Below are positions 3,521 through 64,000 of a stretch of DNA of 64,000 nt, one piece after another. Every line of letters starts with the position of its first letter. The stretch's first letter is position 1. A model generated the notes under the pieces. The model had not been told where the DNA came from, ran no database searches, and saw only the letters and a program-made list of their open reading frames with translations. Both the position numbers and the translations under genes were made by a program. The stretch lies in the IMG/VR virus record IMGVR_UViG_3300025012_000026, positions 124,001-188,000 of that record. One strand, written 5' to 3'.

Positions 3521-6500
3521 CTAATATACATCATAGTTGATAAGTATCTCTTCGTCCTCATCTGACTTCATCCACTTGCCGCCAACGTTCTTTGTCTTCT
3601 TTTGAGTTTTGAATTCATTGACTTTTAAGACATCGTACAACTTGAAGGGGTTTTGGGAGAATATCTTGCCATCCTTGATTTTTGTCTTCATTTCTTTGCC
3701 ATTATTTATTTGGCGTAATGTGACATATGGTTTAGTTTTATCCTTATATACTTCATACTTAATAATTATATAAAAACTATCTCCTGCTCCTTCATTGATA
3801 TACTTAACATATTCTAAATAATCCATTTCAAATTTAACTTGATCTTTAATTGACATTGATTTGTCTTCTATAGTTTGAATAACTTCTCTGACATATCCTA
3901 TCATATCTAATTCTTTATAAAGTGTTTCAGTTGTTTTATTACTATATTTTTTTAATGTATCTTCATTAATATTTAGTTTTGCAATATCTTTGAAATTTAT
4001 TTGTTTACGACTTGCAAAAGTATCATATATTTCAATTATTTGAAGAAGTTTTTTATTCTTGCCAAATTTTTTAAAGAAATCTAGTCCAGTTAATATTTTT
4101 AGCTGTCTTGAATTAGTTGAAGTATTTTTTATATCTTGCAATAGAGTTATAAAATTAGTATATTTAGTTTGTTGTGCTAAATTATATAACTCTATTGCCA
4201 CTTGACCATTGAGAAATTTAATTGAAGTTATAGATTTATAAATTGTATTTGTTTTCCTATCAAATGAATATGTATCTATTGAATTTCCAAATTCAATGTC
4301 TGATAATTTAATATTAAAATAAGGTAATTCTTCAAGAATCTTATGAGTTTTTTCTGTATCGGAATCATATTCATTTAATATAACCGTGTAGTATTCTAAG
4401 GGATAATTTGCTTTTAAATAAGCCCCATATAAACTATCCCAAGCTACAGAAAGGCTGTGACTGGCATTAAAAGAATATTTCGAGGCATCATTGACAACTT
4501 GCCATACATCCTCAAACTTTTCATCATTACCTACGTTTTTTATATATCCTGCAATTAATTCACTTTTAAGTTCTGCAATCTCTTCTTCTTTAAATTTCTT
4601 TTTTGCAATCTTTTTGATGATGTCGTAAGTATGATCTTCTTTAAGTCCACACCATACAAGAAATGCCATAATAGATTCTTGATAAAGCATGAAATGATAT
4701 GATGGTTCTAGAATATCATCTATTTCTTTAACTCCTGTTGAATATTCATTTCTCTCTAAAAATGTATTAAGTAAACTTGCGAACCCTGGCCTAATGGCAG
4801 CTACAAAACCAGAAATTTCTGCTACATTAATGGGGCAGTATCTTTTAACAAAAGTCGTACTTAAATCTGTGTCAACTTGATTAAGAGTTGCTGTCAATCC
4901 ATTTTTATATAAATCCCAAACCTTATCATTAAGGAGTTTTTTTAGTTCTCGAATATTCGGAATTGGTTTATCAAGTAATTTGAAAGTATCTGATACAATT
5001 TTCCAAACTTTTACAGTAAGAAAATCATTTTTAAGATATTTCCAATTATCGGATGTATACCCATCAATACATGCACAAATTTGATCCCCTACTCTTAGCA
5101 ATCCTAATTCTTTAGATATTGGTTTGTTCAACATAACAAAACTACATGGACTAGGAGATATACTATCTATTACTCCTATAAACTTTTTGGATTCTTCAAT
5201 TAAATCTTTCCATTGTGGATCTTTAACGTATTTCTCAACATCTTTACCAACTTCATTGTATTGATCCATTGGCATATCATATGCTCTACATAGGTTTCTA
5301 AAAGCAGAAGACTCTTTCATAGTTCCTATGGCATACATATAGTAAACATTGTCTTCTCCTAAAATATCTTTAGATGCTTTAATTGGAGCTTCTACGTCTG
5401 CCCAATTAAAATCTATATCGGGCAAACTTTTAGATTCAAGAATTCTTGAAACAGTCATAAATCTTGAAGGATATAGAGGAACTTCAGATTCAAATCTATC
5501 TATTTCTGTGAATCCTAGAAGTTTATTTACATAGAAGCTAACCGCACTGCCACGTCCCGTTCTAGTAAGAATTCCATCATATACATTAACTGCCCTATCA
5601 ATAATTCTTTCATTTAATAAAAAATAATCTGCCATATCTGTATCTTTAATGGTATTATATTCAAATGCGATTCCGTCTTGATATTCCTTATGTCTTTTTG
5701 GATCAATATTTTTCTTTTCTTCTTCCCATTTTTCTAAAATAATTGATTTAAGTTTTTTATTAGAATCTTCATTGGGATAAATTGTTGGCATTTTAATATC
5801 TTTTGTGAAAATTAAATCTTCACATTGATCGAATATTAATGTATTATTTAGTGACTGGATAATTTGATTACTTGATAAGACATTTTGATCTTTATATCTT
5901 TCAACGATAGTATCATAATCAGGATAATCTAAGATAAATCCTTCTTCCTCTTCATATCTTAAACCCTTTCCTCTTAGAAATAAATCTCTATCATGTCTTT
6001 GTTCTGGATAGATATAGTGAGAGTCGTTGGCATGAATAATTGGAATATTAAATTCTCTAGCTAATTTAGTTATTTTTAAATTATGTATAACTTGAATTTG
6101 ATGAGCATGCGCTTGTGTTTCTAGATAAAAATTATTACCAAAATGTTTTGCTATAGGTTCTAAAAATATATTTGTAGCATCTTCATCTCTTAATATTCCT
6201 GCAACACAAGCAGATGTAACTATAAAATTGTTTGGATTTAATGAAAGCAATAAGTTTAAATCGATTCTTGACTTATAATAAAATCCTGTCTTATTTGATT
6301 CAGACATTATCTCATTTAATTGATAAAAAGCATCTTGATTTTTACCAATAATAATAATATGGCTATTTCTATTGTCTTTTTCAAATCTATCTTTTACAAT
6401 ATAAAGTTCTGCCCCAAAAATCATTTTAATATCATTCTTTTGGCATAAATCATACATTTCTAAAAAGTTACCGCCCCACCCATGTTGAGTTGTAAATAGG

Positions 6501-50226: not shown

Positions 50227-50258
50227 GTCTACAGTCCCATCACTTAGGGACTGTAGAC
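50227..50258. terminator. stem-loop overlapping the yopR-like stop codon
   Basis: GTCTACAGTCCC-atcactta-GGGACTGTAGAC. Confidence 0.65.
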
Positions 50259-51250
50259 TTAGTTTGTGTTTGCTTATAAGTCTCATACATTTCTTTTAAT
50301 CCTTGCCAACCCCTTTCATCCAATTCTAAGTCTTTAAATAATTGCTTAAAATCTTCAGATTTTAATTCACCAAGTTCTATTTCTTTTTGTAAACATCTGT
50401 CAAGCATACCGGATTGAAATATAAGAGTTGGATTTAAAAATTTAATACCTGTATAAGTTCTAAAGTTTTTAAATCTCGAACTTATATTTCCAACAGTAAT
50501 TTTTTCATCATTGTCACTACTTTTCCTGTCAAGTGTTCTAAGAATATATGGAGTATCTTTAACAGGCATAATAGCAAATCTTCCGGTATCTTCTCCATTT
50601 GATTTATGATAAGTGTCTTCAATGCAAGCCATTCGCAATATTTCCATAGTCCTTGGATCTACAGTTATAGGTCTTGGTCGAGGATTTTTAATTTTGTCAT
50701 CTGGATCTCTAGTTATAATAACTATATTTGATTCAGGGTCTAGATCACTCATTTTTAGATTTCTTAATTCTTCATAGGTGTGTCCTTTTATTGTTCTGCC
50801 TCTGATATTTTCATATAATGATGCCATTAATGCTTTATCGACATAATTATACAATCCGTCACAATAATCATACATTTGTTCTCTAGTGATATAGGAATTT
50901 CTCTGAGCTACTTGATGGATATATTTTGGTAAATCTTCTTTTTTATCAACTAATTTCAATACGTTCATTGAACTGTAATTGTTAAATAAACACCAATCAA
51001 GATATTGCATGATAATTGTATAAGATACACCTAATGATTTAAGAGATTTCTTTTTCATTCCAATTAGTAATTCTTTTACTTCCTCGTAACTAAATTTGCT
51101 CAAATCTTTGTTTTTTTCATGCTCGAATCTACTAACACTTTTTAAGATAGAGGTATTTGTCACTCTAGTGCTTTCATTAGGATATTTCTCATCAAGAAAA
51201 CGATTTTTCAATTCTTCGTTAAATAAAGTTCTTTCAATAGTTAATGACAT
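50240..51250 (-). CDS. mrpR: SPbeta YopR/MrpR (SroF)-like master repressor with a tyrosine-recombinase fold
   Basis: FNEELKNRFL, KDLSKFS..V.ELL, QYLDW, YITRE, L.NY..KA....L.E, Y...NG and FLNP..I..SG.L blocks match recalled YopR; HxxR catalytic motif absent; follows a yopQ homolog. Confidence 0.8.
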   Translation of the reverse strand: MSLTIERTLFNEELKNRFLDEKYPNESTRVTNTSILKSVSRFEHEKNKDLSKFSYEEVKELLIGMKKKSLKSLGVSYTIIMQYLDWCLFNNYSSMNVLKLVDKKEDLPKYIHQVAQRNSYITREQMYDYCDGLYNYVDKALMASLYENIRGRTIKGHTYEELRNLKMSDLDPESNIVIITRDPDDKIKNPRPRPITVDPRTMEILRMACIEDTYHKSNGEDTGRFAIMPVKDTPYILRTLDRKSSDNDEKITVGNISSRFKNFRTYTGIKFLNPTLIFQSGMLDRCLQKEIELGELKSEDFKQLFKDLELDERGWQGLKEMYETYKQTQTKSTVPK

Positions 51251-52605
51251 TATGATACCTCCTTCTGAAGTTGATAAACAACATCTTTAAAATAATCAGA
51301 AATCTTTTTAAATGTAGATAAATTTACATGATTTTCGATTCCAATTTTTTTCCAAATTTTATTTGATTTATCGAAATCTAAAGAGTTTAATACTTTTACT
51401 AATCTAGGTTTCCAGTCATCACCATATTCTTGTCTTAATAAATCTCCTAAAATAATATACCCCATAAACATGTTGTTATGTGCAAGATATGAATTTTCTT
51501 TGGTATTAGATAATTCTGTTTTAAACTTTGAATAATTGAGTCCAATAATATTATTGAACAACTCTACAATATCATTTTCAACTTGTGCGGTTCTAATAAC
51601 TGGCTCCTCTTTAAGATCATAAAGAAATTCAATGGATTTTGATAAAGTATCAAATGTCATTAATTTGTTTTCAATAATCAATTCCTTTTCATTTAAGGCT
51701 ATACGATTAAACATTTCGTTTGCCCTTTGTCTAGAATTAATAGCTTTTGCTACTTCCATATTTGGATTGGCTGTATTTTTAAAATCAACCCATTCAGTTT
51801 CAATTTGTGTACTTTTACTTTCTTGTCGAATTATTTCATTGGCACGCTCTTCTGTAACGTGGTGAATATAAATTGATGTAACCCTATCTATGTCATTCTT
51901 AATTTCAACAGTTTTTAACATGCCACAGGTTCTATTTGCACCATCAATTATGTCTACTAACGTAGACGCATTATCTGGTTCAATTAATAACGTTCTAGTT
52001 TTAAGATCATACTTAAACTTTTCTTGTCCATTTATTTTGCGAATGTTCCACATAATAGCATTAGTGCAAAAAGAACCATCTATCATTGACTCTGTAATTT
52101 CTGATACCTTTTTGCTGTCAATATTAATAGATTCAACAATTCTGTTTCCACTTCGTCTTTTTAAAAGTTGTCTTTGAGTATTTGGATTATATGTTAATAG
52201 TCCATTACCCATATAAAGATTAATATTTTGATAAGTTTCCTTTGTACATAACCATTGACTATCATCTATTTGATCGACATTATGAAGTAAAATATACTTA
52301 ACTTTTTCTTTATCAAGTTTTTTGTAATAATCAGCAGAAGACAATTCAATCTCTGTAAAGAACTCATCTGGATTTATTTCTGTTCGGTGAGTGTATCCAT
52401 AAAGATATTTTGTAAATAAACATAGTTCAATTTCTTCAACATAAACCAAAGGAATTGCTTTAGTGAATATACCTGTAGTTCTGCCCCTCGGTATACCTCT
52501 TTCTAATAATTTGCCTATGACTTGCTCTTGAATTTGATTGTCATTTGAATAATCTTCAATGACTAAATTAAGAATATCCTCAAGAATTTGACGATCTTGT
52601 TTCAT
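51250..52605 (-). CDS. yopQ: SPbeta YopQ (SroE)-like DndB/DGQHR-family protein
   Basis: INP..FFTE.E, LL.YNPN.QR, DIIDGANR (DGQHR variant) and LDFDK.NK.W..IG blocks; about 451 aa; RBS places the start at MKQDRQ. Confidence 0.8.
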   Translation of the reverse strand: MKQDRQILEDILNLVIEDYSNDNQIQEQVIGKLLERGIPRGRTTGIFTKAIPLVYVEEIELCLFTKYLYGYTHRTEINPDEFFTEIELSSADYYKKLDKEKVKYILLHNVDQIDDSQWLCTKETYQNINLYMGNGLLTYNPNTQRQLLKRRSGNRIVESINIDSKKVSEITESMIDGSFCTNAIMWNIRKINGQEKFKYDLKTRTLLIEPDNASTLVDIIDGANRTCGMLKTVEIKNDIDRVTSIYIHHVTEERANEIIRQESKSTQIETEWVDFKNTANPNMEVAKAINSRQRANEMFNRIALNEKELIIENKLMTFDTLSKSIEFLYDLKEEPVIRTAQVENDIVELFNNIIGLNYSKFKTELSNTKENSYLAHNNMFMGYIILGDLLRQEYGDDWKPRLVKVLNSLDFDKSNKIWKKIGIENHVNLSTFKKISDYFKDVVYQLQKEVS

Positions 52606-52678
52606 AATATTTATTCCTCCTTTTGACATATCAGCAACAAGTTATGTTGCTATGTATTGGTTAATAATACGCAATGCT

Positions 52679-52777
52679 ATTATAATATATAATATGCCAA
52701 TACGTCAAGAAGAATGCCTGATTAGTTTTATTATTTATGATTATATCATTATAACATTATTGATTGCATAATGTCAA
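52679..52777 (-). promoter_or_regulatory. two tandem sigma-A promoters upstream of yopQ-yopR
   Basis: TTGACA(52772-77)-18-TATAAT(52748-53) and TTGACG(52703-08)-18-TATAAT(52679-84). Confidence 0.6.
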
Positions 52778-52816: not shown

Positions 52817-53638
52817 TTAATTAATCATATTCTCATAATCTTGATTCCCAACATTTTCACAAACCATTTGTGCTGTTTTTTCTTTGCATAAATAATGATT
52901 AATTACCATTAGTAACCATGTTAAAAATATTACTGGAATAGATGTTATTATAACAATAGCAATTAGTTCATCAATAAATTGTAATTTAATTATAATGCTA
53001 TTGTTTTCTACTAATTTGTTCATATAATTTACCACTAGAACTCTAGTTGACAATACTAACAACAAACCACTAATAATAAATTTATTTCTGATAACCGAAC
53101 TAAATAGATTAATTTTTACTTTGCTGTTTTTTCTAACTAGAATTAAGGAAACAATACATAGATGCAAAATTTTGATTGGAATGGCCCATAAGATATTGTA
53201 CATGACATTATCATTAAAAAAACTATATGGCTTATCTAATAACGATAATAGAAGTGGACAGTATGCGTATTCTATTATTCCTACAATGACGAAGCTTCCG
53301 ACTGTATAGATTGCTGTTTTAAATATTAATGATATGTTTATGTCAAAACTGTTTGTGATGACTATGTATTCCATTAAGATTATCATTAGAAACATAATTG
53401 ATAATATAGAATTTTGTTTTGGTACTATGATAATATACTTGAAGATATTTGCCATTATTGCTACTGGTAATGCTGTGAGCATAATCCATGTTAGACTACG
53501 TTTCCACATTAAAATATCTAGTAGATCATTAATTTTTAAAAGTGATAATGCGATGATTACAATGAACATTTGTTCAGGGAGGCCAACAAATATGGTGTTT
53601 AGGATGGCATTTGTTATGGATTGCATATGGGTGTTCAC
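52817..53638 (-). CDS. polytopic membrane protein B, AgrC-sensor-like without kinase domain
   Basis: about 7 TM segments; MQ.ITNAILN....LPE..F motif shared with 55463-56272; directly downstream of agrB; no H-box or GHKL domain. Confidence 0.7.
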   Translation of the reverse strand: MNTHMQSITNAILNTIFVGLPEQMFIVIIALSLLKINDLLDILMWKRSLTWIMLTALPVAIMANIFKYIIIVPKQNSILSIMFLMIILMEYIVITNSFDINISLIFKTAIYTVGSFVIVGIIEYAYCPLLLSLLDKPYSFFNDNVMYNILWAIPIKILHLCIVSLILVRKNSKVKINLFSSVIRNKFIISGLLLVLSTRVLVVNYMNKLVENNSIIIKLQFIDELIAIVIITSIPVIFLTWLLMVINHYLCKEKTAQMVCENVGNQDYENMIN

Positions 53639-53644
53639 TCCTTT

Positions 53645-54277
53645 TTATTTTATTTTTGAATCTAGCGCAGAATAAACAATTTGCCCTATTCTGCTTATAC
53701 TAAATAATTCTAATAATAATCCAAAACAACTTGAAATTACAATAATCTTTAGATTGAAAAGTAGGGAGATGGTCATTATGATTGTCCATATAAATAGATA
53801 ATATGATGACCATCTTTTGAATTTTTTGATTTCTAATGGCTCTGTGATTGGTTTATTTGGTGTATCTCTAGGTACATAACGATAAATTATATACATTGTC
53901 ATTACAACACAGAAATTGAATAAATACCACATGTCTATAAATGACCAATATTGGAGTGTATATTTGATTAATAATGCTGATCCAATGAACTGAATGGTTG
54001 AAAAAGTTATACATTTATTATATTCCCCGAAATGGTATCCACCTGCTATGATACGTAAACTACTGAAGGTCAAGGCGATTATTAGGGTAGGAAGCTTTAT
54101 GCTAAAAATAGATGCTAAAGATACCATTAACATAGCCTTAAAAATAGCACCCCAAACTACCATGAAACCATATGTGAAAACCTCAATCTGATCTTCTACG
54201 GTAGGATATTTATCATTAGGTACTTTTTTTGCTAACCACTTAGCAGAATGATTTGATACAAATTCTATAAAACTCAT
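53645..54277 (-). CDS. agrB: AgrB autoinducing-peptide processing membrane cysteine protease
   Basis: E...YG; LRIIAGGYH......C (conserved Arg/His/Cys); P.DTPNKPI; about 210 aa, multi-TM. Confidence 0.92.
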   Translation of the reverse strand: MSFIEFVSNHSAKWLAKKVPNDKYPTVEDQIEVFTYGFMVVWGAIFKAMLMVSLASIFSIKLPTLIIALTFSSLRIIAGGYHFGEYNKCITFSTIQFIGSALLIKYTLQYWSFIDMWYLFNFCVVMTMYIIYRYVPRDTPNKPITEPLEIKKFKRWSSYYLFIWTIIMTISLLFNLKIIVISSCFGLLLELFSISRIGQIVYSALDSKIK

Positions 54278-54304: not shown

Positions 54305-55129
54305 TCATGCATAAGCCACCTGTTGCCCTACACTAGTATAATTATTTTCTTGTATATTCTGTCTGATTGGTTTAACTTTATTTAGATTTTTCAAAGTCTC
54401 TATTGCTTCCTCTTCGTTTACATGTAATTCTAAAATACCCTCAGATTTCATAAGGGCAATTTCAACTTTCAACATTATATTTGAAGGACATTCAGCGACT
54501 TTTTGAAATACTCCATTCTTTCCTATTAATCTTCTTTTTGATATTGTGTTTGGTAATTCACAACATATAATAGAGTCCTGTGGGATATTACATTCTTTAC
54601 TGCTTGCGAAAACGTGAGTCGGCATCTTAGCTTTGGATCTAGTTGTCATCGCTATGACAATAGAGTTGCTAGAGCAAGCATTCCCCTTATTATTTTGCAC
54701 CACAAGCACCATTCTTGGGCCGCCTACTTCACTATCTATCCCTTTGTCACCAAAGTCTGCGAAACAAAAATCTCCTCTTCTGACACGAATATTTTTTATT
54801 TGCTCTAAATCATTATTTGCATATAAAGAGTATCCACATGCTATTTTTAGATCCTGCAACGAAACCCTACCTTCTGAATTATTTGCGAAAACATTGAGGG
54901 TTTGAACGTTCGGATAAACATTTATTTTTTCACGAACGATAAGTTCTATGTACCCTCCTTCAATTTTGCAGTCTGCTCCAAAATTATTGATTGTCCTATG
55001 GGTTCCTTTAGCAAGCATAATTAAACTAGCTAGTTTCTTAAAATCCTTTTTGGCATTTACCTCAGTGTTGGTGGTATTAGTTGATTTGGCAAATAATTTG
55101 TTGAACATAATAATGCACATCCTTTTCAT
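54305..55129 (-). CDS. XRE-type HTH - MazF/PemK endoribonuclease fusion
   Basis: N-term L..AKG..RTIN.F...C.I...YI......P....L..FA....G.VS...L..ACGY (XRE HTH); C-term RRGD..FAD.G....SE.GG.R..LVVQN..GN..S....IAMTT...K.PTH...DS.I.CE...TISK.RL (MazF); probable start MFNKLF at 55108. Confidence 0.85.
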   Translation of the reverse strand: MKRMCIIMFNKLFAKSTNTTNTEVNAKKDFKKLASLIMLAKGTHRTINNFGADCKIEGGYIELIVREKINVYPNVQTLNVFANNSEGRVSLQDLKIACGYSLYANNDLEQIKNIRVRRGDFCFADFGDKGIDSEVGGPRMVLVVQNNKGNACSSNSIVIAMTTRSKAKMPTHVFASSKECNIPQDSIICCELPNTISKRRLIGKNGVFQKVAECPSNIMLKVEIALMKSEGILELHVNEEEAIETLKNLNKVKPIRQNIQENNYTSVGQQVAYA

Positions 55130-55132
55130 ATT

Positions 55133-55201
55133 TAATAAGATATAAAATAATTTTCTTTAACTGATAGTATAATTATATCTTATTATGTATGGATATGTCA
55201 A
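55133..55201 (-). promoter_or_regulatory. promoter of the HTH-mazF/agrB/sensor-B operon with overlapping inverted repeat (candidate operator)
   Basis: TTGACA(55196-201)-18-TATAAT; 13-bp perfect IR TAATAAGATATAA (55133-45) / TTATATCTTATTA (55173-85). Confidence 0.7.
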
Positions 55202-55287: not shown

Positions 55288-55407
55288 TTATTTATTTAGA
55301 CATTTAGGATCTTTTGGTTGATAAGAAAACGCCCAAGAAGCCATATTTGATGTAAATAGTGCTAACATAGATACTAATCCAGCAAGAACAATATATACTT
55401 TCTTCAT
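55288..55407 (-). CDS. agrD: AgrD cyclic (thio)lactone autoinducer propeptide, 39 aa, missing from the ORF track
   Basis: MKKVYIVLAGLVSMLALFTSNMA-SWAFS-YQPKDPKCLNK; RBS AAAGGAGGTG; amphipathic leader and clostridial (H/Y)QPxxPxxL tail. Confidence 0.9.
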   Translation of the reverse strand: MKKVYIVLAGLVSMLALFTSNMASWAFSYQPKDPKCLNK

Positions 55408-55462: not shown

Positions 55463-56272
55463 TTAATCAATAAGATTTTCTTGCGTTTGCTGTATACGTT
55501 TTTCTATACCGACTACACAATTTATCATATACCACAACACCATAAGAAATATAGTTGGTAGACTTAGAATGAATCCTATTGATAATATTTGTTCCCAAAT
55601 TGGCAATGTGCTTAAGATATTATTATATCCTATCAATTTCACAACATAAATTGTAAATAGTGTTAAGAAAGATATTATAAAAATTATCATATTGGTTAAT
55701 GGTTTATTTTTGAACACTAAATTGTACAATTTGATATTTACTTGTTCATTCATCTTAACTATAAAAAATATTATTATTGAGAATTCTAAAATTCTAGAAG
55801 GAATTACTAGTAAAAACATATAAGAAATATTTTGATTAAAATATTCATAAGGAATTTTTAACAATGAAAACGTTAGTGGCATATAAGCTAATTCAATTAA
55901 ACTGACTATTATTAGAGTAATCATTGAGTAAACTATGGTTTTAAATATTAGTTTATTTTCTTGAGTTATTTCAGTAATTCTTATTATGTAAATAATCGCC
56001 AACCAAAATATTATTAATGAGATTATTGATGTTAATAATTTAGGCAAAATTATAATATACTTAAAAATACTTATACACATTGCCATCAGCAATGAAGGTA
56101 TTATAATCCACTTAATATTTATTCTCCACATTCTTATGTCAAGTAAATCAAATCTTTTGAACAATATTAATGTCATACATGTTACAAATATTTCTTCAGG
56201 TAAGGATATAAGAACCATGTTCAATAAAGCATTTGTTACACCTTGCATATGTATTACCTCTTTCTTATTCAT
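55463..56272 (-). CDS. polytopic membrane protein A, AgrC-sensor-like without kinase domain
   Basis: about 7 TM segments; paralog of 52817-53638; directly upstream of agrD; probable start MQGVTN at 56248. Confidence 0.7.
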   Translation of the reverse strand: MNKKEVIHMQGVTNALLNMVLISLPEEIFVTCMTLILFKRFDLLDIRMWRINIKWIIIPSLLMAMCISIFKYIIILPKLLTSIISLIIFWLAIIYIIRITEITQENKLIFKTIVYSMITLIIVSLIELAYMPLTFSLLKIPYEYFNQNISYMFLLVIPSRILEFSIIIFFIVKMNEQVNIKLYNLVFKNKPLTNMIIFIISFLTLFTIYVVKLIGYNNILSTLPIWEQILSIGFILSLPTIFLMVLWYMINCVVGIEKRIQQTQENLID

Positions 56273-56329: not shown

Positions 56330-56941
56330 TTATTGATTCATATATACCTTATTAATTTCTTTGACTGAACAGTAAACTATTATAAAAGCAAATATTCTTA
56401 TTAAAATATCACCAATACTCCAAATTGACATACCAAATATATCAAATATATCGGACAAAAATATTAGATTTGTCATATGATCACCTAAAACATGAAAATC
56501 ATTAAACTTAGAAGCATTCATAATCATATCATACTGAGTGTAACCAGTTGAATAAGATACATCTGGGAAAATAGGCATCATCCCATGATTAAAGTACATT
56601 ACAATATAATTCAATACAAATCCACACAAGAGACTACAACAAGCGATAATATACTCTTTATACTTCTCATGCCTAAATAGAACATCAAGTCCTAGAATCA
56701 TATATGATCCTAATATAGCATTCTTTATTATGTGTTGATATTGAAGAAAGTAGTAATTTTGATTCATTATTGTATATTGTAGATAGATGTAAAATATAGA
56801 CATTAATATAACTGGATAGATACTCCATCTTTTTAGTATTGGTTTTATATTGTATGATTCTTTATGTATTTGGAATTTTCCTAGTTTTATGTAAAGATAT
56901 ATTTTAGAGAATATGAGCGATGCTATTAGTGTCTCGACCAT
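56330..56941 (-). CDS. DUF5317-family membrane protein
   Basis: LNYIVM..NHGMMPI...H......T.L.FLSDI.......SIGDI pattern; multi-TM. Confidence 0.7.
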   Translation of the reverse strand: MVETLIASLIFSKIYLYIKLGKFQIHKESYNIKPILKRWSIYPVILMSIFYIYLQYTIMNQNYYFLQYQHIIKNAILGSYMILGLDVLFRHEKYKEYIIACCSLLCGFVLNYIVMYFNHGMMPIFPDVSYSTGYTQYDMIMNASKFNDFHVLGDHMTNLIFLSDIFDIFGMSIWSIGDILIRIFAFIIVYCSVKEINKVYMNQ

Positions 56942-57001: not shown

Positions 57002-58738
57002 CTACGGAGGTTTATTATTTTGATCTTTAATCATATTCTCATAATCTACTAAATACATCCATTTAAGTAATTCACCAGTCTCAAGATCTTTACCACATGT
57101 TTTTTGTTTATTTTTGCAACATCTTCCAATTCCGACACGATTTATATTATATTCTTTTGATGCGTTTGCAATAGAATTGAATACTTTGTTTGTTGTCAAA
57201 CATATTATCTTCATATCTCTTGAACTATGTAGTATATACTTTATTTCTTGTTTATCTTTAAAAATATATTCTTCGTAATACATCCAAACCATCTTTTCCC
57301 CTGTTTCGGGATGTTTTCCTGCCGATTTTTGTATACCTAAACAACATGATGAAATATCACTATTCCTTATATTATACTTACTTGTTGCATCAGTTATAGA
57401 ATTAAAAATTTCATTAGTTGTTAAACAAACAACTTTTGTTTGCATTACTTCTTTAGTATCATAATCACACCACCCCAATTCTACACCTTGTTTTAAATAT
57501 CTAGAAACTGTAGAGGTATGAACCTTTATTATATCTGCTATTTCTACAGTCCTTTTAATTCCACTATTCCATAAATTACATGAAATTTTAACTAAACTTG
57601 AACATCCAGCCTCATGACACTTCAACCAATCTATATCTTTTTCTTTAAAATTAAGTAATATGGGCAATCTAGACCTCATTATGCTATTCTTTATCCACTC
57701 TAACTCAGACTTTCTACAATCGATTATTATGTAATTATTAATATTGTTTGTTCTCGCTAACCACTCTTTATCAAAATCATTTTCCTGAACTTCTGCTAAT
57801 GAAACTTTCCAATTACCTGTTATTTCTTCATAATGCTGAATTCCTTGAATTTCAATGACAATTTTATCTAATTTTTCTATGTAAAAATCATATCTGTATC
57901 CACCACACCATTTAAAAGTTATTTTACTCAATTGAGATTTAAAATTTAGATGTAATTGTTCTAAAAAAGATAGAAAGAACTTCTCTGGATAACTCACACC
58001 ATCGGAACATCTAGGGCAAGCAAATCCATGTACTACTAAGGTGCTAAAATTTAAATTTTTATCATATCCACAATCTGGACATTTCATAGGTATTTTTGGA
58101 TTTGATCCAAAAGAATGTTTATTTGCATCTTCTTTATTTACCAAATACTTAATTAAATGTGGATGAGTTGTCACAACCATATTACACATATTGCAATCAA
58201 GACTTCCATTTTGTCCATTTGTAAAACTACTAATACTTTTTAATTCACTTTCATGTTCTGGATGTTCTAAACACTTAAACCAATAACCTTTTTTATTAAA
58301 ACCTGCGGAACTAAAGCTTACATCATTAGGGCTTAATACTTTCCCATTTTTTATATTTTTTGCATCATCCCATCTAGATAATATCCAATCTGCCAATTCT
58401 TTAGGGAGATTATCGTAACACCATTGATAAAAAGATTTACTATTTTTTAATTTTGTAATTCTTCCATTTTCACTCACAAACAGTTTTATGGCACATTTTA
58501 TACAATAATATTTTTCACCCTCATGTCTTAAATCTATATAATGTCGCCATATGACATTTTTTATAATTTCTCCGCAACCATCACACTGAATATCGACTAA
58601 TGCGTGTGAACTATGAGGTAAATCCTCTACTTTCACTTCGAATTCATTGCCCATTTTTGTAAAGATATAATCTCTTTGTTCATAATATTTTTTAATACTT
58701 GCATTCCATTTCATTTTTACGGTTTTAGTTATTAACAA
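57002..58738 (-). CDS. homing-endonuclease-like protein (Zn-ribbons + DUF559/Vsr-like nuclease + NUMOD1 repeats)
   Basis: several CxxC ribbons; S.PE...YDFYI...IEIQGIQHY; C-terminal KVVCLTT..F.SI..A repeats and KSAGKHP.TGE..W shared with 34290-35495. Confidence 0.8.
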   Translation of the reverse strand: MLITKTVKMKWNASIKKYYEQRDYIFTKMGNEFEVKVEDLPHSSHALVDIQCDGCGEIIKNVIWRHYIDLRHEGEKYYCIKCAIKLFVSENGRITKLKNSKSFYQWCYDNLPKELADWILSRWDDAKNIKNGKVLSPNDVSFSSAGFNKKGYWFKCLEHPEHESELKSISSFTNGQNGSLDCNMCNMVVTTHPHLIKYLVNKEDANKHSFGSNPKIPMKCPDCGYDKNLNFSTLVVHGFACPRCSDGVSYPEKFFLSFLEQLHLNFKSQLSKITFKWCGGYRYDFYIEKLDKIVIEIQGIQHYEEITGNWKVSLAEVQENDFDKEWLARTNNINNYIIIDCRKSELEWIKNSIMRSRLPILLNFKEKDIDWLKCHEAGCSSLVKISCNLWNSGIKRTVEIADIIKVHTSTVSRYLKQGVELGWCDYDTKEVMQTKVVCLTTNEIFNSITDATSKYNIRNSDISSCCLGIQKSAGKHPETGEKMVWMYYEEYIFKDKQEIKYILHSSRDMKIICLTTNKVFNSIANASKEYNINRVGIGRCCKNKQKTCGKDLETGELLKWMYLVDYENMIKDQNNKPP

Positions 58739-58805: not shown

Positions 58806-59228
58806 TTATGCATACACAATATTCTTATCTTTCTGACCTATTGAGAATTGAATAAGTATACCTTGATTTATACGTTCCATAGTTTCAGAATTACAATATC
58901 CAACTTTCTTCAAAAATATATCTTCATTTTTGTTAACTAACATAACTTGTTCACAGAGAGCAATAGAATCTCTTAATAGTCCTGAAGAGTTTTTATTTAT
59001 GCTTTTGTGAGTTGGTAATTTTGACTTCGTGCCGATAGAACTAATTGGACATATATGCACAACTGGACTGTAGCGATTTGCCATATTATTACTTACAATT
59101 ATGCATGGACGCAATTTTCCTTGGATAGATCCCTTGCCTTCTCCTAGATCAACTAACCATATCTCTCCTCGATTAAATTGTTGTGGTTGTTGAACATTAT
59201 TTATTACATTTTGCATAATAATTATCAC
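58806..59228 (-). CDS. mazF: MazF/PemK (NdoA-like) endoribonuclease with no adjacent antitoxin
   Basis: RGEIWLVDLG...GS.QG..RPCIIVSN...NRYSP....PISS...KLPTH...GL.RDS.AL.EQ. Confidence 0.9.
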   Translation of the reverse strand: MIIIMQNVINNVQQPQQFNRGEIWLVDLGEGKGSIQGKLRPCIIVSNNMANRYSPVVHICPISSIGTKSKLPTHKSINKNSSGLLRDSIALCEQVMLVNKNEDIFLKKVGYCNSETMERINQGILIQFSIGQKDKNIVYA

Positions 59229-59340: not shown

Positions 59341-59611
59341 TTACCACCATAAACTAGGCAAACACAATGCAAATATATTAACTATATCTTCTACTTTTTC
59401 TTTCTGCTCGTCAGTCCTTTTCATTGTACATAGATAATCTTTCATATAACCATAGTTTAAATGTGAAGTCCATTGACCAAGTTTCTTTTTCATCAAAACC
59501 ATATATTTCTCTTTCTTTAATCCATCGTTCTTGCCTTGAATCATCTTTATTCCAACCTTGAGGAGTATTGTCTTCTAATATACCAAGGTCTTTAAGATAT
59601 TTACCTAACAT
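59341..59611 (-). pseudogene. probable internally deleted or frameshifted phage gene
   Basis: N-part ...GFDEKETWSMD..F..WLYERL.MY.E ends at 59411; a plausible C-terminus (...FALCLPSLWW) lies in another frame ending at 59341. Confidence 0.45.
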
Positions 59612-60318
59612 TTATTTTCCTCCTCTAACCCCTTAAATGCCATAATAGCAACCTCTAATTGTTCCACACTTGGTTCCTTTGTGAAAATATATTTCTGCAA
59701 TAAACTTCCTACAAAATAAATTGGCTTAACAAACCACTTAATAATCCTATTATCAGATCTCATTACTTCATATGTAATTCCCCATCCTAATAACATTGCT
59801 CCAGAATGAACTAATGAAACTAATAATCCACTAATTATAATTAATCCAATATACAAATTAGTTCCACAATTATCATTTACACAACTTTGATTCATTGATG
59901 TTTCAATCGACACTTTACCATTTATTTCGTAATCATTTACCACTTTATGTTCTGCTCCATGATAATATTTCGTTTTACTACATTTATTAAATAACAACAT
60001 AAAAATAGGCAATATAATGAAATTATGATAGTTACTGTTTTGTAGACTGCTTGGTTCAAAATTGTATAGACCATAAGAATAAATAAGACTTAGTGCCAAT
60101 AATAACAAACCAAATTTTGTAAAAATTAATTTTAATATAATCCAATATGCTCTAGCAAAAGGTATTCTGTAAAGAAAATTCTCTAAAATATTTTGCTTAT
60201 CATCTTTGAGTATTTTATTTACAATAATATTATTGCCTTTTCTTATTGCTGTTGAAGTATGAGTTTCTGATTCAAACATTACATTATTGTATCCTGCTCT
60301 ACCACCTAGTAAATTCAT
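59605..60318 (-). CDS. DUF1385 (YqhQ-like) membrane metal-binding protein
   Basis: GGRA....VMF, IPF.R, YHGAEHKV, CGTN and LQKY..TKEP...QLEVA motifs. Confidence 0.85.
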   Translation of the reverse strand: MNLLGGRAGYNNVMFESETHTSTAIRKGNNIIVNKILKDDKQNILENFLYRIPFARAYWIILKLIFTKFGLLLLALSLIYSYGLYNFEPSSLQNSNYHNFIILPIFMLLFNKCSKTKYYHGAEHKVVNDYEINGKVSIETSMNQSCVNDNCGTNLYIGLIIISGLLVSLVHSGAMLLGWGITYEVMRSDNRIIKWFVKPIYFVGSLLQKYIFTKEPSVEQLEVAIMAFKGLEEENKC

Positions 60319-60832: not shown

Positions 60833-61285
60833 CTACTCAAACATTTTAACAGTATTCTTAAATATCCCTGCCATATCACAAGAATAACCAAATCTATCAT
60901 GATTTTTATCAATATCAATAAGAATATTTCCATCATTGTGTCTTAATGACGATGCTTTCCAATCACAAACCATTTCAATTAAATCTACTAAATCCATATC
61001 TTTAATTCCATTAGGCCAATGTTGGGGGTGATGTCTATTTTTTGCATAATGATGATCTAATGCTTCTTTAAGTTCTTCAAGAGTCTTTTTATCTTCTTCG
61101 CTTCCATAGGTGCAACCAGCCAATTTTGAATTATGTTGAGCAAAAATATCTGCTTCAAAGTCCTCTAGTTTTGAATTATCATGATTGATTGCTCTTTCAC
61201 CTAATTTCTGGATAACTTTATTCATAAACTTATTGACCAATTGCTTATGTTTGTATGTGTCACACATTGTTTCATATTTTGTCAT
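60833..61285 (-). CDS. HD-like protein (DUF5662-type)
   Basis: H...V...RA..HDNSKL...HHY..NRHHP.H...DL.EM.CDW. Confidence 0.7.
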   Translation of the reverse strand: MTKYETMCDTYKHKQLVNKFMNKVIQKLGERAINHDNSKLEDFEADIFAQHNSKLAGCTYGSEEDKKTLEELKEALDHHYAKNRHHPQHWPNGIKDMDLVDLIEMVCDWKASSLRHNDGNILIDIDKNHDRFGYSCDMAGIFKNTVKMFE

Positions 61286-61457: not shown

Positions 61458-61832
61458 TCATCTACATAACTTTAAATTTTTTAACCAATTTAATTCTTTT
61501 GGAAAATCATCATAATCGATAATTCCCATATTAATACATGTCAATGTATTAGGTTCTAAATCCGTCCATCCTCTATCTCTGATAGCGATATAACCTTTAA
61601 CTTCTAATTCCTCTAATTTTGATTGCGGAGCATAAAGAATAATTTTCTTTTGATAATTCGTCATATATAATTCAATAGTTGAATCGTATTCCTTACTCTC
61701 ATCAATCATAAAATTATAAAAATATACTGCTACTGCGTGTCCGACTTGACCTGCAAGTTTTCCTTTATTGATTTCAATATCTTCATTAACTAATATATAC
61801 ATTCTTAAATCCATAATTAAATCTCCTATCAA
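61458..61832 (-). CDS. pth2: peptidyl-tRNA hydrolase, Pth2 family
   Basis: MYILVN.D....KGKLAGQVGHA...KIIL...I.DRG.TD...T.TC. Confidence 0.85.
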   Translation of the reverse strand: MIGDLIMDLRMYILVNEDIEINKGKLAGQVGHAVAVYFYNFMIDESKEYDSTIELYMTNYQKKIILYAPQSKLEELEVKGYIAIRDRGWTDLEPNTLTCINMGIIDYDDFPKELNWLKNLKLCR

Positions 61833-62316: not shown

Positions 62317-64000
62317 TTATTTCAAAACTCTCGCTCTAATTTCTGCTAAACTTTCATCTCTTACTAATTTTCCATCAATAAATACATCTTCAAGTAAATC
62401 AATAATATCAATTGCATCTTTTTCCATTTCATTTAATCCATCAACCAAATAGATACCATTTTCACCATCAACTACTGCAACCATTCCTTTTTGAGATTTT
62501 TTGATTCCACCAATATCGGTTTTAGGATCTTTAAAGATAAACTTTTCAACTCCATCAATAACCGTATAAGTGGCCTTTAAAGCGAACGAAAATGTGTCTC
62601 TGGTGTGATAACCTAAAGAATAACTTCCAACTCCGTATACGATGTTTTCTGCTGAAAACCCCTTTGCTTCTAATTGTTTGAAAGTTTCTTCTGCAATTTC
62701 TGGACTTATGCTATCTCCATATATTAAGCCCACATGACTATCTAGTACCTTATACCCTTTACTATTAATAGTTCCTCCAAAGGTATCCCATAATGCTTCT
62801 ACAGAACCCTTTTGCTCTATAGTTAATTTTACTTCTTTACAAATATGAACATTAGCACCATCAATATAATAATATTGTTTATCATGTCTATTCCAATCAA
62901 TTTCAATAACAATTTCATAATGCTTATCTTGAAATTTAAAAATTGCATCTTGCCTAGAAATACCATGTTCTCCATGAGGTGTATCATTTCTTATATCGTC
63001 AATTATTCTCTCCAACATAATTTCCTTGCAATCTTCCAGATTATCACAATATTCTTCATTGGTTAAATCTTCAACAATCACATTACCGCAAATAATCTTT
63101 ATTGGACTTCCAGAATCAGGACGAATGACACACTTACCATTTCTACTCATAATATCATCTTTCAATGAAGGTAAAATATTCCCCAAGACATTAAAATAAT
63201 CATACCCATCACTAACTATACTTACAATTCCACTAGGGGCAACTTCAGTAATCATTCTCTTAAAATATCTCAAATCATCTTGATATCCACATTGAATACT
63301 ATGTTCCGTTGCTAACACACTTGCTGAAACTAATTCCTTTTCCACATTAACACCATAATATTGCTCTAAATATTGAATACTTGGAATCGTATCACTACCA
63401 GTAAAATATAATAAATGTCCTGCTCCTGTAGTTACTGCATCTTCATGACCACTCATACCTCTATAACTAAAATTATGACATTGCCATTGAATATGATCTT
63501 TACTATCACATGTTTTCTCAGCCCACTTTTCACAAATGTCTCTATATTTCTTTACAATTGTTGTTGCAGTAATTACTTTCCACATATTTGCGGAAATCAA
63601 TGTCTCTAAGAAATTAGTCAACCAATAGAACTCTTTTTTAGTATTTTCAATTGTAAACACAGGAACTTTCATTGGAATCAATGTGCCTTCTTTTACTGCC
63701 TTGATTTTAATAGGAAGGTATCCTAAATCATGTAATGCTTCAATATGAGTTGTATCTGCACAATTATCTCCTAGAGAATTTTTAATGATTCTTTTATAAT
63801 CTGCAACTACTATTGATTTATCAACATTGAAAAAGTTTTCATTGAAATTATCAATTAGATAATCTTTAATAAATCCTTGTAAACCAAAGAATACTACTTC
63901 ATTAATTCCTTCAATTCTTGAATGTCTAGGCGTAAATGTAGAATAAATTTTTTCTGTACCTTTTTCACTCATAATGAGGTGGCTTATTTTGTACGAATCT
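62317..64000 (-). CDS. nicotinamide phosphoribosyltransferase family (Nampt/NadV or Namat), 5' end beyond the window
   Basis: frame continues to the window edge as ...DSYKISH; FFGLQ, HNFSYRG, ATEHS, VSDGYD, IRPDSG, IYGDSI, GVGSY and KDPKTD...KKSQKG motifs. Confidence 0.92.
   Translation of the reverse strand, partial: DSYKISHLIMSEKGTEKIYSTFTPRHSRIEGINEVVFFGLQGFIKDYLIDNFNENFFNVDKSIVVADYKRIIKNSLGDNCADTTHIEALHDLGYLPIKIKAVKEGTLIPMKVPVFTIENTKKEFYWLTNFLETLISANMWKVITATTIVKKYRDICEKWAEKTCDSKDHIQWQCHNFSYRGMSGHEDAVTTGAGHLLYFTGSDTIPSIQYLEQYYGVNVEKELVSASVLATEHSIQCGYQDDLRYFKRMITEVAPSGIVSIVSDGYDYFNVLGNILPSLKDDIMSRNGKCVIRPDSGSPIKIICGNVIVEDLTNEEYCDNLEDCKEIMLERIIDDIRNDTPHGEHGISRQDAIFKFQDKHYEIVIEIDWNRHDKQYYYIDGANVHICKEVKLTIEQKGSVEALWDTFGGTINSKGYKVLDSHVGLIYGDSISPEIAEETFKQLEAKGFSAENIVYGVGSYSLGYHTRDTFSFALKATYTVIDGVEKFIFKDPKTDIGGIKKSQKGMVAVVDGENGIYLVDGLNEMEKDAIDIIDLLEDVFIDGKLVRDESLAEIRARVLK

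Follow-up and report, generated by a model that had tools for sequence, protein, structure and literature searches.

We analyzed a stretch of 64,000 nucleotides (the window) that comprises bases 124001–188000 of the 227,247-bp viral record IMGVR_UViG_3300025012_000026. The record is rated complete by CheckV and belongs to a phage of a Clostridium-type host. The minus strand of the window carries a gene for a protein made of three parts: an N-terminal helix-turn-helix (HTH) domain of the XRE/SinR kind, a MazF/PemK endoribonuclease domain and a conserved C-terminal tail of 45 residues. The gene is part of a cassette of agr-type communication genes, and since agrD adjoins it directly upstream, it sits between agrD and agrB. 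Below, we describe the protein, the cassette and its conservation, and we then weigh what the fusion may do. The coordinates of the features are collected in Table 1.

The HTH–MazF–tail protein

The first-pass annotation of the window listed the gene as an open reading frame (ORF) of 274 aa at 54305–55129(-). That frame is present, but its start had to be moved. In most of the 26 full-length homologs, the first residue is the one that corresponds to M8 (MFNKL), and a conserved ribosome-binding site, AAAGGA, lies about 9 nt 5' of the ATG at 55108. Because of the homolog starts and the ribosome-binding site, we place the start at ATG 55108 rather than 55129, and the true product probably has 267 aa. 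Residue numbers in this text follow the 274-aa numbering. The agrD gene directly upstream had gone unmentioned.

The MazF domain is evident both from sequence and from the predicted structure. Residues 117–228 match PemK_toxin (PF02452) in Pfam with an E-value of 1.7e-17 (64 bits, cut-off 23.1), phrog_1936 matches residues 112–257 at E 1.5e-12, and MazF sequences from the PDB align to the domain at E ~1e-16. An AlphaFold2 (AF2) model of the fusion, with a predicted local distance difference test (pLDDT) score of 73, has the SH3-like barrel of the MazF fold. By Foldseek, it matches 4HKE, 7BXY, 1NE8 and 4MDX with template modeling (TM) scores, relative to the target, of 0.85–0.91 and a root-mean-square deviation (rmsd) of 1.4–1.8 Å. 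When the structures are superimposed, the identity to Bacillus anthracis MoxT and to the MazFs of B. subtilis, B. cereus and Staphylococcus aureus is 38–40%. Residue alignment equates R139 (in GGPR) and T162 (in AMTT) with R25 and T48 of B. subtilis MazF. The T48A change in the latter protein abolishes both its RNase activity and its pro-lysogeny effect (PMC10769878). R139 and T162 are unchanged across 27 family members, and the distant fusions P0029–P0034 retain a dyad of Arg plus Thr/Ser. The fusion family shows no variation at its counterparts of E20, N36 and R85 either, three residues with high conservation among MazFs of the UACA type (PMC8634880). Since the RNA-binding and catalytic positions are invariant, we favor a working RNase; judged from these residues, the domain is probably such an enzyme, of uncertain specificity.

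The identity of the N-terminal domain was settled only by profile and fold searches because direct sequence searches gave nothing significant. No Pfam HTH family matched the window fusion protein at E < 0.1, and the best that a Pfam HTH scan of 17 family members produced was HTH_AraC at 0.087 and HTH_19 at 0.12. Nothing significant came from searching the domain sequence directly against Pfam, NCBIfam, PADLOC and the PDB. A language-model atlas search returned uninformative scores of 0.60, tblastn of the domain against 50,697 phage records gave zero matches even at E 1, and blastn of the fusion locus gave zero matches as well. At E ≤ 1e-3, a profile of 17 family N-domains retrieved 275 proteins from 1.84 billion representatives. 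Among the best 44 of these 275 matches, Pfam HTH_3 was present in 20, others carried HTH_31, HTH_19, HTH_26 or the LexA-type Peptidase_S24, and six were further HTH–MazF fusions. The profile broadened with these matches then reached the HTH of SinR in the PDB (E 0.0024) as well as phage Cro proteins and immunity repressors.

The fold agrees with the profile. Helices of the N-domain in the AF2 model fall at residues 19–41, 47–54, 58–65, 75–83 and 91–97, and a separate AF2 model of this domain (pLDDT 81) likewise has five helices. All of the 50 best PDB matches that Foldseek found for the domain model are XRE-type HTH domains with TM scores of 0.6–0.8, at E-values that are modest (0.016–0.2). 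They include SinR, ClgR, C.AhdI, CapH, DdrO and P22 C2, and SinR superimposes on the model with a TM score of 0.79–0.81 and an rmsd of 1.8 Å. On the profile evidence and the predicted fold, the N-terminal domain is an XRE-type HTH. The first-pass annotation had read from the letters alone both this HTH and a MazF domain keeping its catalytic Arg and Thr. The former is borne out by the profile search and the fold that was found, and the latter is upheld by Pfam and by the alignment to R25/T48.

The C-terminal tail is conserved in 27 of 27 family members, with an end of the form [A/V/S][F/Y/C]A. Its helix at residues 239–251 is modeled by AF2 with a pLDDT of ~82, and the disordered stretch after it with a pLDDT below 50. 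The window also encodes a stand-alone MazF, and the families of the fusion (54305–54316) and of the stand-alone MazF (58806–58817) both end in [V/A/I][A/E/V][Y/F]A-COOH. The C-termini of the distant fusions are similar (…SFA, …AYAV and …VYAH). The motif common to both MazF families could be a protease tag or a docking motif.

The cassette and its conservation

The full-length HTH–MazF–tail architecture is represented by 26 protein clusters with 50–93% identity, and more distant fusions were found at 30–40% identity. The fusion is carried by 13 IMG/VR contigs and by one contig binned into a metagenome-assembled genome (MAG) of Clostridium sp. The N-domain family occurs in just 1 of 401 sampled genomes of the class of that MAG, namely the MAG itself, so the fusion family is essentially phage-borne. 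There are two irregular members. P0028 (L017:898–1344), of 148 aa from a 1.4-kb metagenome contig, is a predicted protein in which the HTH and the first MazF strand are joined to the last transmembrane helix and the tail of a receptor-like protein, either through a natural deletion or as a chimera of the assembly. The other, P0027, is a fragment with a shifted frame.

The fusion and the gene order of the cassette recur together in about 17 distinct, mostly viral loci, including some where the fusions are only 30–40% identical. A synteny table made by tblastn over more than 20 loci shows one and the same order. In nearly all loci with enough flank, the order is a short MazF, then further on DUF5317, a kinase-less membrane protein of ~270 aa, agrD, a stem-loop, a σ70 promoter bearing an inverted repeat, HTH–MazF and agrB. 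The order continues 3' with, sometimes, a second membrane paralog and then with the YopQ/SroE-like and MrpR/SroF-like genes. The distant loci retain the core of this order: L008 reads integrase–membrane protein–peptide–fusion–AgrB–YopQ-like, and L010 reads membrane protein–peptide–fusion–DUF7487–YopQ-like–MrpR-like.

The agr genes around the fusion are identified as follows. The agrD product exceeds the cut-off of 19 for TIGR04223 quorum_AgrD with 30.8 bits (E 2.4e-7), and homologous peptides are encoded at its position in the related loci. We take its motif, SWAFS followed by YQPKDPKCL, to resemble those of clostridial AgrDs by comparison with Clostridium perfringens. The agrB gene of the cassette is the sole one in the genome, and it adjoins the fusion gene in nearly all loci. 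The membrane protein encoded 5' of agrD, receptor A, keeps that position in all loci with enough flank. It has zero Pfam matches, and its best structural match in the ESM Atlas is to the membrane part of a 433-aa HATPase_c_5 (AgrC-type) kinase, with a TM score of 0.64 over 224 residues. The modeled structure thus provides a lead that receptor A may be an AgrC-sensor-like membrane protein. Its cluster has 637 members, of which 76% are viral. The second receptor is present only in the window, L024, L025 and L028. For these membrane proteins, an identity as CPBP/MroQ-type proteases was dropped, there being no Pfam match and the structure being AgrC-sensor-like. The DUF5317 gene is syntenic in most loci with enough upstream flank. 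HATPase_c, HATPase_c_5 and LytTR domains are all absent from the 227-kb genome, so it encodes neither an AgrC kinase domain nor an AgrA/LytTR regulator.

These genes have diverged unequally. Between the window and its closest relative, L024, where the fusion protein is 91% identical, the nucleotide identity is ~57% in the receptor transmembrane region, ~57% in agrD and 56–84% in agrB, whereas it is 81–91% in the promoter and fusion gene (segments compared: window 55463–56272 and 53645–54277 with L024:3868–4674 and 5853–6476). A hypervariable specificity segment beside a conserved response segment is a hallmark of the staphylococcal agr allelic groups. Going by these identities, the cassette looks like agr-style specificity groups in phages, in which the HTH–MazF gene and its promoter would hold the conserved "response" role.

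The fusion gene, agrB and, in the window phage, receptor B follow a predicted promoter whose -35 TTGACA keeps its position in 13 of 17 related loci that were examined. The gap between the fusion gene and agrB is 27 bp and that between agrB and receptor B is 6 bp, with zero terminator-like sites between them. An inverted repeat lies on this promoter. The pattern TAAGATAT-N-ATATCTTA has a single occurrence in the entire 227-kb genome, and a looser version of it has two matches in the window versus 0.15 expected by chance. At least 10 diverged loci have the same half-sites, spaced 15–36 bp apart. Transcription is expected to start downstream of the left arm; an RNA hairpin is therefore less likely than a site bound by a protein, and we treat the repeat as a candidate operator. 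An RNA stem-loop separates the agrD unit from this promoter. In a comparison of 16 loci, compensatory changes on both sides of the stem preserve 8 of its 10 base pairs, and no U-tract comes after it. The stem-loop may terminate or stabilize the agrD transcript.

The cassette is followed by genes that bear on lysogeny. Wherever the flank is long enough, homologs of YopQ and MrpR are encoded directly 3' of it. The master repressor of SPβ-like phages is MrpR, which has a recombinase fold (PMC10516654), and in those phages the place of the cassette is taken by the arbitrium genes together with the sro operon (PMC10769878, PMC10516654). The YopQ homolog also matches phi3T and CST029 of phage c-st by tblastn. 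A second perfect TTGACA-18-TATAAT promoter, with a TG extension, is located 5' of the YopQ-like and MrpR-like genes at 52748–52777, and there is an 11/12 promoter site at 52708–52679. In the C. botulinum phage c-st, CST027 (L015:6183–6845) encodes a 220-aa MazF-like protein, with its MazF domain at residues 18–130 and a C-terminal extension of 90 aa. CST027 is two genes 5' of the YopQ (CST029) and YopR (CST030) homologs, and there is no HTH and there are no agr genes there. Hence, the neighborhood of MazF with YopQ/YopR reaches beyond the agr-bearing phages. CST025, CST026 and CST028 were checked as counterparts of the receptor, AgrD and AgrB, and all three were rejected.

These observations bear on what the first-pass annotation had proposed for the locus. 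It had the fusion heading an operon with agrB and receptor B, which fits the 12/12 promoter, the short gaps and the lack of a terminator-like site. The fusion is conserved in related loci, as the clusters and syntenic contigs demonstrate, and the recurrence of the gene order down to fusions of 30–40% identity speaks for its membership in a communication circuit, as had been suggested. Three mechanisms had been offered for the fusion: a DNA-binding regulator dimerizing through the MazF fold, a DNA-tethered RNase, or a partner of host or phage MazE/MazF; each of them may apply, and they are taken up below. The likeness that was drawn to the arbitrium/MazF axis (SroB/AimX) is strengthened by the YopQ/SroE and MrpR/SroF homologs downstream.

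Table 1. Features of the fusion gene and its cassette in the window.
Feature	Coordinates	Strand	Description and evidence
MrpR/YopR/SroF homolog	50240..51250	(-)	Pfam MrpR_N_CB E 2e-17, MrpR_C_cat; tblastn phi3T E 4e-23, c-st CST030
YopQ/SroE homolog (DndB-like)	51250..52629	(-)	Pfam DndB, phrog_5732; tblastn SPBc2 yopQ E 5e-17
Receptor B	52817..53638	(-)	Paralog of receptor A, 39% identical, E 1e-50
agrB	53645..54277	(-)	AgrD-processing membrane peptidase, 3' of the fusion gene; Pfam AgrB E 1.4e-34
HTH–MazF–tail fusion gene	54305..55108	(-)	267 aa from conserved MFNKL start; listed ORF reaches ATG 55129
Conserved C-terminal extension	54308..54445	(-)	aa 229–274; acidic helix 239–251, then disordered tail ending VAYA
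MazF/PemK endoribonuclease domain (predicted)	54446..54781	(-)	aa 117–228, R139 and T162; Pfam PF02452
XRE/SinR-like helix-turn-helix domain	54839..55075	(-)	Five helices, aa 19–97; profile and fold
Candidate operator, inverted repeat	55134..55184	.	Arms AATAAGATATAA at 55173–55184 (overlaps -10) and TTATATCTTATT at 55134–55145; 27 bp between
σ70-type promoter of the fusion–agrB(–receptor B) unit (predicted)	55172..55201	(-)	TTGACA-18-TATAAT, 12/12, promoter scan
RNA stem-loop	55241..55270	(-)	UUCG-type loop, directly 3' of agrD
agrD	55288..55407	(-)	39-aa autoinducing-peptide precursor; likely ring SWAFS then YQPKDPKCL; TIGR04223
Receptor A	55463..56272	(-)	Multi-pass membrane protein resembling AgrC sensor domain, kinase-less
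DUF5317 membrane protein	56330..56941	(-)	First gene of the receptor–agrD unit; Pfam PF17248 E 1.9e-18
Stand-alone MazF	58806..59228	(-)	140 aa, head of the same gene block; Pfam PemK_toxin E 6.4e-24

The stand-alone MazF is 27% identical to the MazF domain of the fusion. It belongs to a family of 120–140 aa, is syntenic in the relatives and ends with the same xYA motif. No antitoxin gene adjoins the fusion gene, which has agrD upstream and agrB downstream. An AbrB-type MazE (PF04014) is absent from the 227-kb genome; ribbon–helix–helix (RHH) antitoxins were not searched with a model. Small ORFs 5' of the short MazF were rejected as an antitoxin, not being homologous across loci. The Clostridium sp. 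MAG that is the candidate host has a canonical chromosomal alr–mazE (106 aa)–mazF locus (L038:1486–2113, G001 contig 214), whose MazF shares 38% identity with the phage MazF domain. The host mazEF could be the source of an antitoxin acting in trans, or it could be a titration target. The tail of the fusion gave no alignment with the candidate host MazE.

There are several other genes nearby. Between the short MazF and DUF5317 genes, the window has a 578-aa HNH/NUMOD homing-endonuclease-like gene (57002–58738; phrog_4538, phrog_559), which looks like a mobile insertion because those two genes adjoin in L003, L004 and L018. The genes 5' of the block encode DUF1385 (59605–60318), DUF5662 (60833–61285), the peptidyl-tRNA hydrolase PTH2 (61458–61832) and an enzyme of the NAMPT/NAPRTase family (62317–63972). 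The last of these suggests NAD salvage, as in other large phages. In relatives, RNA-repair genes are located a few kb 5' of the module: RtcB at L018:558–1778 and a polynucleotide kinase–phosphatase/Rnl1-type ligase at L003:1–379. They were rejected as part of the module since RtcB and Rnl1-like genes are absent from the genome of the window phage. RtcB-type ligases are able to reseal MazF-type cuts, so their co-occurrence with the module in relatives may merit a look.

Possible functions of the fusion

In phi3T, the output of arbitrium is control of host MazF, the RNase activity of MazF promotes lysogeny, and AimX and YosL inhibit MazF (PMC10769878). We tentatively propose a comparable role for the fusion. 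At the sequence level, DUF5317, the sensor-like membrane protein and agrD appear to form one transcription unit closed by the conserved stem-loop, and the fusion gene and agrB, plus receptor B in the window phage, appear to be read from their own consensus promoter. The fusion would dimerize through its MazF domain, like all solved MazFs, and the two HTH domains of the dimer would bind the inverted repeat overlapping its own -10 box. We favor a DNA-binding autoregulator because a conserved inverted repeat is found on the fusion's own promoter. Binding of the repeat would set the level of the fusion and of AgrB, and hence of signal production. By analogy to host MazF in phi3T and from the genomic position, the RNase output may bias infection toward lysogeny or away from lytic growth. 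As candidates to restrain the RNase, we consider the C-terminal tail of the fusion, host MazE, the receptor, and fast degradation through the conserved C-terminus. Taken as a whole, the fusion would be a conserved component of a phage agr-type cassette that acts inside the cell as both regulator and effector: it would autoregulate the shared promoter, and its RNase would feed the lysis–lysogeny switch. On the sequence and the analogy together, we regard this as quite possible, if still somewhat short of probable.

A number of points weigh against this proposal. The synteny among related phages is in part a matter of shared ancestry rather than function, and the distant fusion loci are short contigs. 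A simple dimer does not readily fit an arm spacing that ranges from 15 to 36 bp, and the candidate operator could be bound by another protein. On the side of the transcripts, the sequence of the record is present in groundwater and soil metagenomes, and all the runs containing it are DNA, with zero RNA runs. What indicates the lifestyle of the phage is limited to the repressor homologs and a single tyrosine-recombinase domain. No link was found from the membrane sensor to the fusion, and the cytoplasmic end of the sensor is not especially conserved. The MazF domain has its own peculiarities. Where B. subtilis MazF has G18, the fusion family has an invariant Asp, and where it has P26, the window's clade has Met. 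The first-pass annotation had noticed this R-M in place of the usual R-P; it is real in the window protein, but it is confined to that clade, and most homologs have R-P. Because of these two replacements, the cleavage specificity, and possibly the activity, may differ from those of known MazFs. Counts of UACAU in the genes of the module versus a codon-shuffled expectation are too low to be informative.

The fusion might instead be a single-chain toxin–antitoxin (TA) serving prophage or plasmid addiction or abortive infection, which we consider rather unlikely. The HTH would then be the DNA-binding half of an antitoxin, the tail or host MazE would silence MazF until some trigger took it away, and the adjacency of agrB would be incidental or a matter of co-regulation only. 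Such a system would account for the lack of a separate antitoxin in the phage, which has no AbrB-type MazE and no conserved small ORFs 5' of the short MazF. An autoregulatory inverted repeat on its own promoter is also typical of type II TA operons. There are precedents for fused TAs, e.g., CapRel (PMC13423816). Against this alternative, no PADLOC defense model matches the fusion. The tail has features that would suit a neutralizing segment, having a conserved acidic helix (pLDDT ~82) and a conserved [A/V][F/Y]A C-terminus that could serve as a protease tag, and the candidate host has a canonical mazE–mazF pair with its MazF 38% identical to the phage domain; the tail itself, however, bears no similarity to that host's MazE. 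What an addiction or abortive infection system leaves unexplained is the fixed position of the gene with agrD and agrB down to 30–40% identity, and its conservation amid diverging specificity genes.

It is distinctly unlikely that the protein is a peptide-sensing transcription factor, with the MazF fold acting as a dimerization or ligand domain for a product of the cassette, such as an imported signal or the cytoplasmic AgrD fragment that AgrB releases, which tunes the HTH in the manner of RRNPP regulators, and with the RNase secondary or lost. The combination of an HTH with a dimeric domain and an operator-like repeat at its own promoter would suit such a factor, as would a gene placed between a peptide gene and its processing enzyme in a phage that has no other regulator for the cassette. 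MazF grooves do bind peptides, namely the MazE tail and AimX/YosL (PMC10769878). However, the family as a whole, distant members included, keeps its catalytic Arg and Thr and several positions in contact with RNA, which is unexpected if cleavage is dispensable. Furthermore, Agr peptides are normally sensed extracellularly, and a sensor-like membrane protein is present. We think it very unlikely that the fusion is a modulator of other MazEF parts, forming heterodimers with the phage stand-alone MazF or host MazF or soaking up host MazE and so freeing host MazF as phi3T_93/SroA does. In its favor, the gene block includes another conserved MazF, canonical MazEF is present in the candidate host, the phi3T proteins work by binding MazE or MazF (PMC10769878) and cross-neutralization among non-cognate MazEFs has been reported (PMC10893535). 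On the other side, an identity of only 27% between the MazFs of the phage makes heterodimers unexpected, and the retained catalytic dyad argues that the fusion itself is the enzyme.

Returning to the fusion as regulator and effector of the cassette, a more specific version can be formulated, though we judge it unlikely. In it, phage communication would do without a phosphorelay. The AgrD/AgrB cyclic peptide would be read by the kinase-less AgrC-like sensor, which would control how available or how active HTH–MazF is, for example by sequestering or releasing it, and the RNase and repressor activities of the fusion, together with the YopQ/MrpR-type repressor, would set the lysis–lysogeny decision. 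If true, arbitrium would have a convergent counterpart that likewise leads to MazF and in which the toxin is an integral part of the phage circuit. If the fusion is indeed the regulator and effector of the cassette, agr signaling could run without a kinase or response regulator, and phages could use MazF toxins as integrated regulators tethered to DNA. The fusion family (267 aa) is also a compact protein for asking how a MazF is restrained without a separate antitoxin.

Comparison with known systems

The fusion shares with the MazF/EndoA proteins of Firmicutes (4MDX/1NE8, S. aureus MazF and MoxT 4HKE) the fold, the catalytic Arg and Thr, and the motif string SE…R(P)…QN…GN…T…PTH. Unlike them, it has the XRE HTH and the 45-residue tail, lacks an upstream mazE and is phage-borne in an agr cassette. 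It also differs by the invariant Asp at Gly18 throughout the fusion family and by Met at Pro26 in the window phage. The "MazF-like growth inhibitor" proteins of phrog_1936, which include c-st CST027 and Lactobacillus phage homologs, are similar in having a MazF domain with a C-terminal extension, but they have no HTH at the N-terminus, and their genes do not lie between agrD and agrB. In having a toxin domain covalently linked to an antitoxin-type DNA-binding domain, with a probable autoregulatory operator, the fusion resembles the fused TAs (CapRel, EzeT) and the XRE-HTH antitoxins (HigA/MqsA). The context of the fusion, in contrast, is a communication cassette and not a defense island, and its neutralizing segment is only putative. 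A 2009 survey of type II systems listed AbrB, RHH and others as partners of MazF, and XRE was not among them (PMC2701414).

A phage of a clostridial host encoding AgrB and AgrD has a parallel in the Clostridioides difficile phage phiCDHM1, which is described as carrying agrD, agrB and agrC (PMC3901668). In comparison with phiCDHM1 and the bacterial agrBDCA system, the sensor-like protein of the window phage is kinase-less, and its genome is without a HATPase or LytTR domain. Its gene order is also non-canonical for agrBDCA, being agrD–X–agrB with HTH–MazF as X. The window phage group does resemble the agr specificity groups in that a hypervariable AgrD and sensor region stands beside conserved flanks. 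Full-text literature searches on MazF–HTH fusions, on phage agr with MazF, and on fused TAs with PemK or XRE turned up neither the architecture nor the cassette, and BFVD contains C-extended phage MazFs with no clear HTH–MazF counterpart found among them. The HTH–MazF architecture is a previously undescribed one, almost entirely phage-borne, and a new variation on MazF toxins, phage agr genes and SPβ-type lysogeny control. It would remain so even if the function that we propose for the fusion were wrong. That the cassette in its entirety represents a new signaling route is a real, if unproven, possibility.

The closest functional comparison is with arbitrium, by which phages count infections with a peptide. 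In phi3T, the RNase of host MazF executes this peptide-based count (PMC10769878). As in the arbitrium/sro arrangement of SPβ and phi3T, the window phage has a peptide-communication cassette immediately 5' of YopQ/SroE and MrpR/SroF homologs. MazF RNase activity tips the lysis–lysogeny choice in phi3T (PMC10769878), and the fusion may play the corresponding role here. A structured RNA is found between the peptide gene and the effector in both, taking the form of a terminator between aimP and aimX in phi3T and of the conserved stem-loop in the window phage. The two differ in their signal, which is AimP in phi3T and an AgrD/AgrB cyclic peptide in the window phage. They also differ in their MazF since phi3T uses that of the host under small phage inhibitors, whereas the window phage encodes its own, fused to an HTH. 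No cassette gene matches AimR, AimP, AimX or SroA–D according to Pfam and PHROG, which give AgrB, AgrD, MazF and DUF5317, with no dedicated search for AimR, AimP or AimX having been made. An unrelated peptide system, agr, thus stands before the same type of repressor gene and carries its own MazF fused to a DNA-binding domain. This suggests that the fusion cassette is a second route by which the peptide "talk" of phages is wired to MazF. If that is true, then the coupling of a peptide signal through MazF to lysogeny is a recurring design and not a peculiarity of Bacillus phages.

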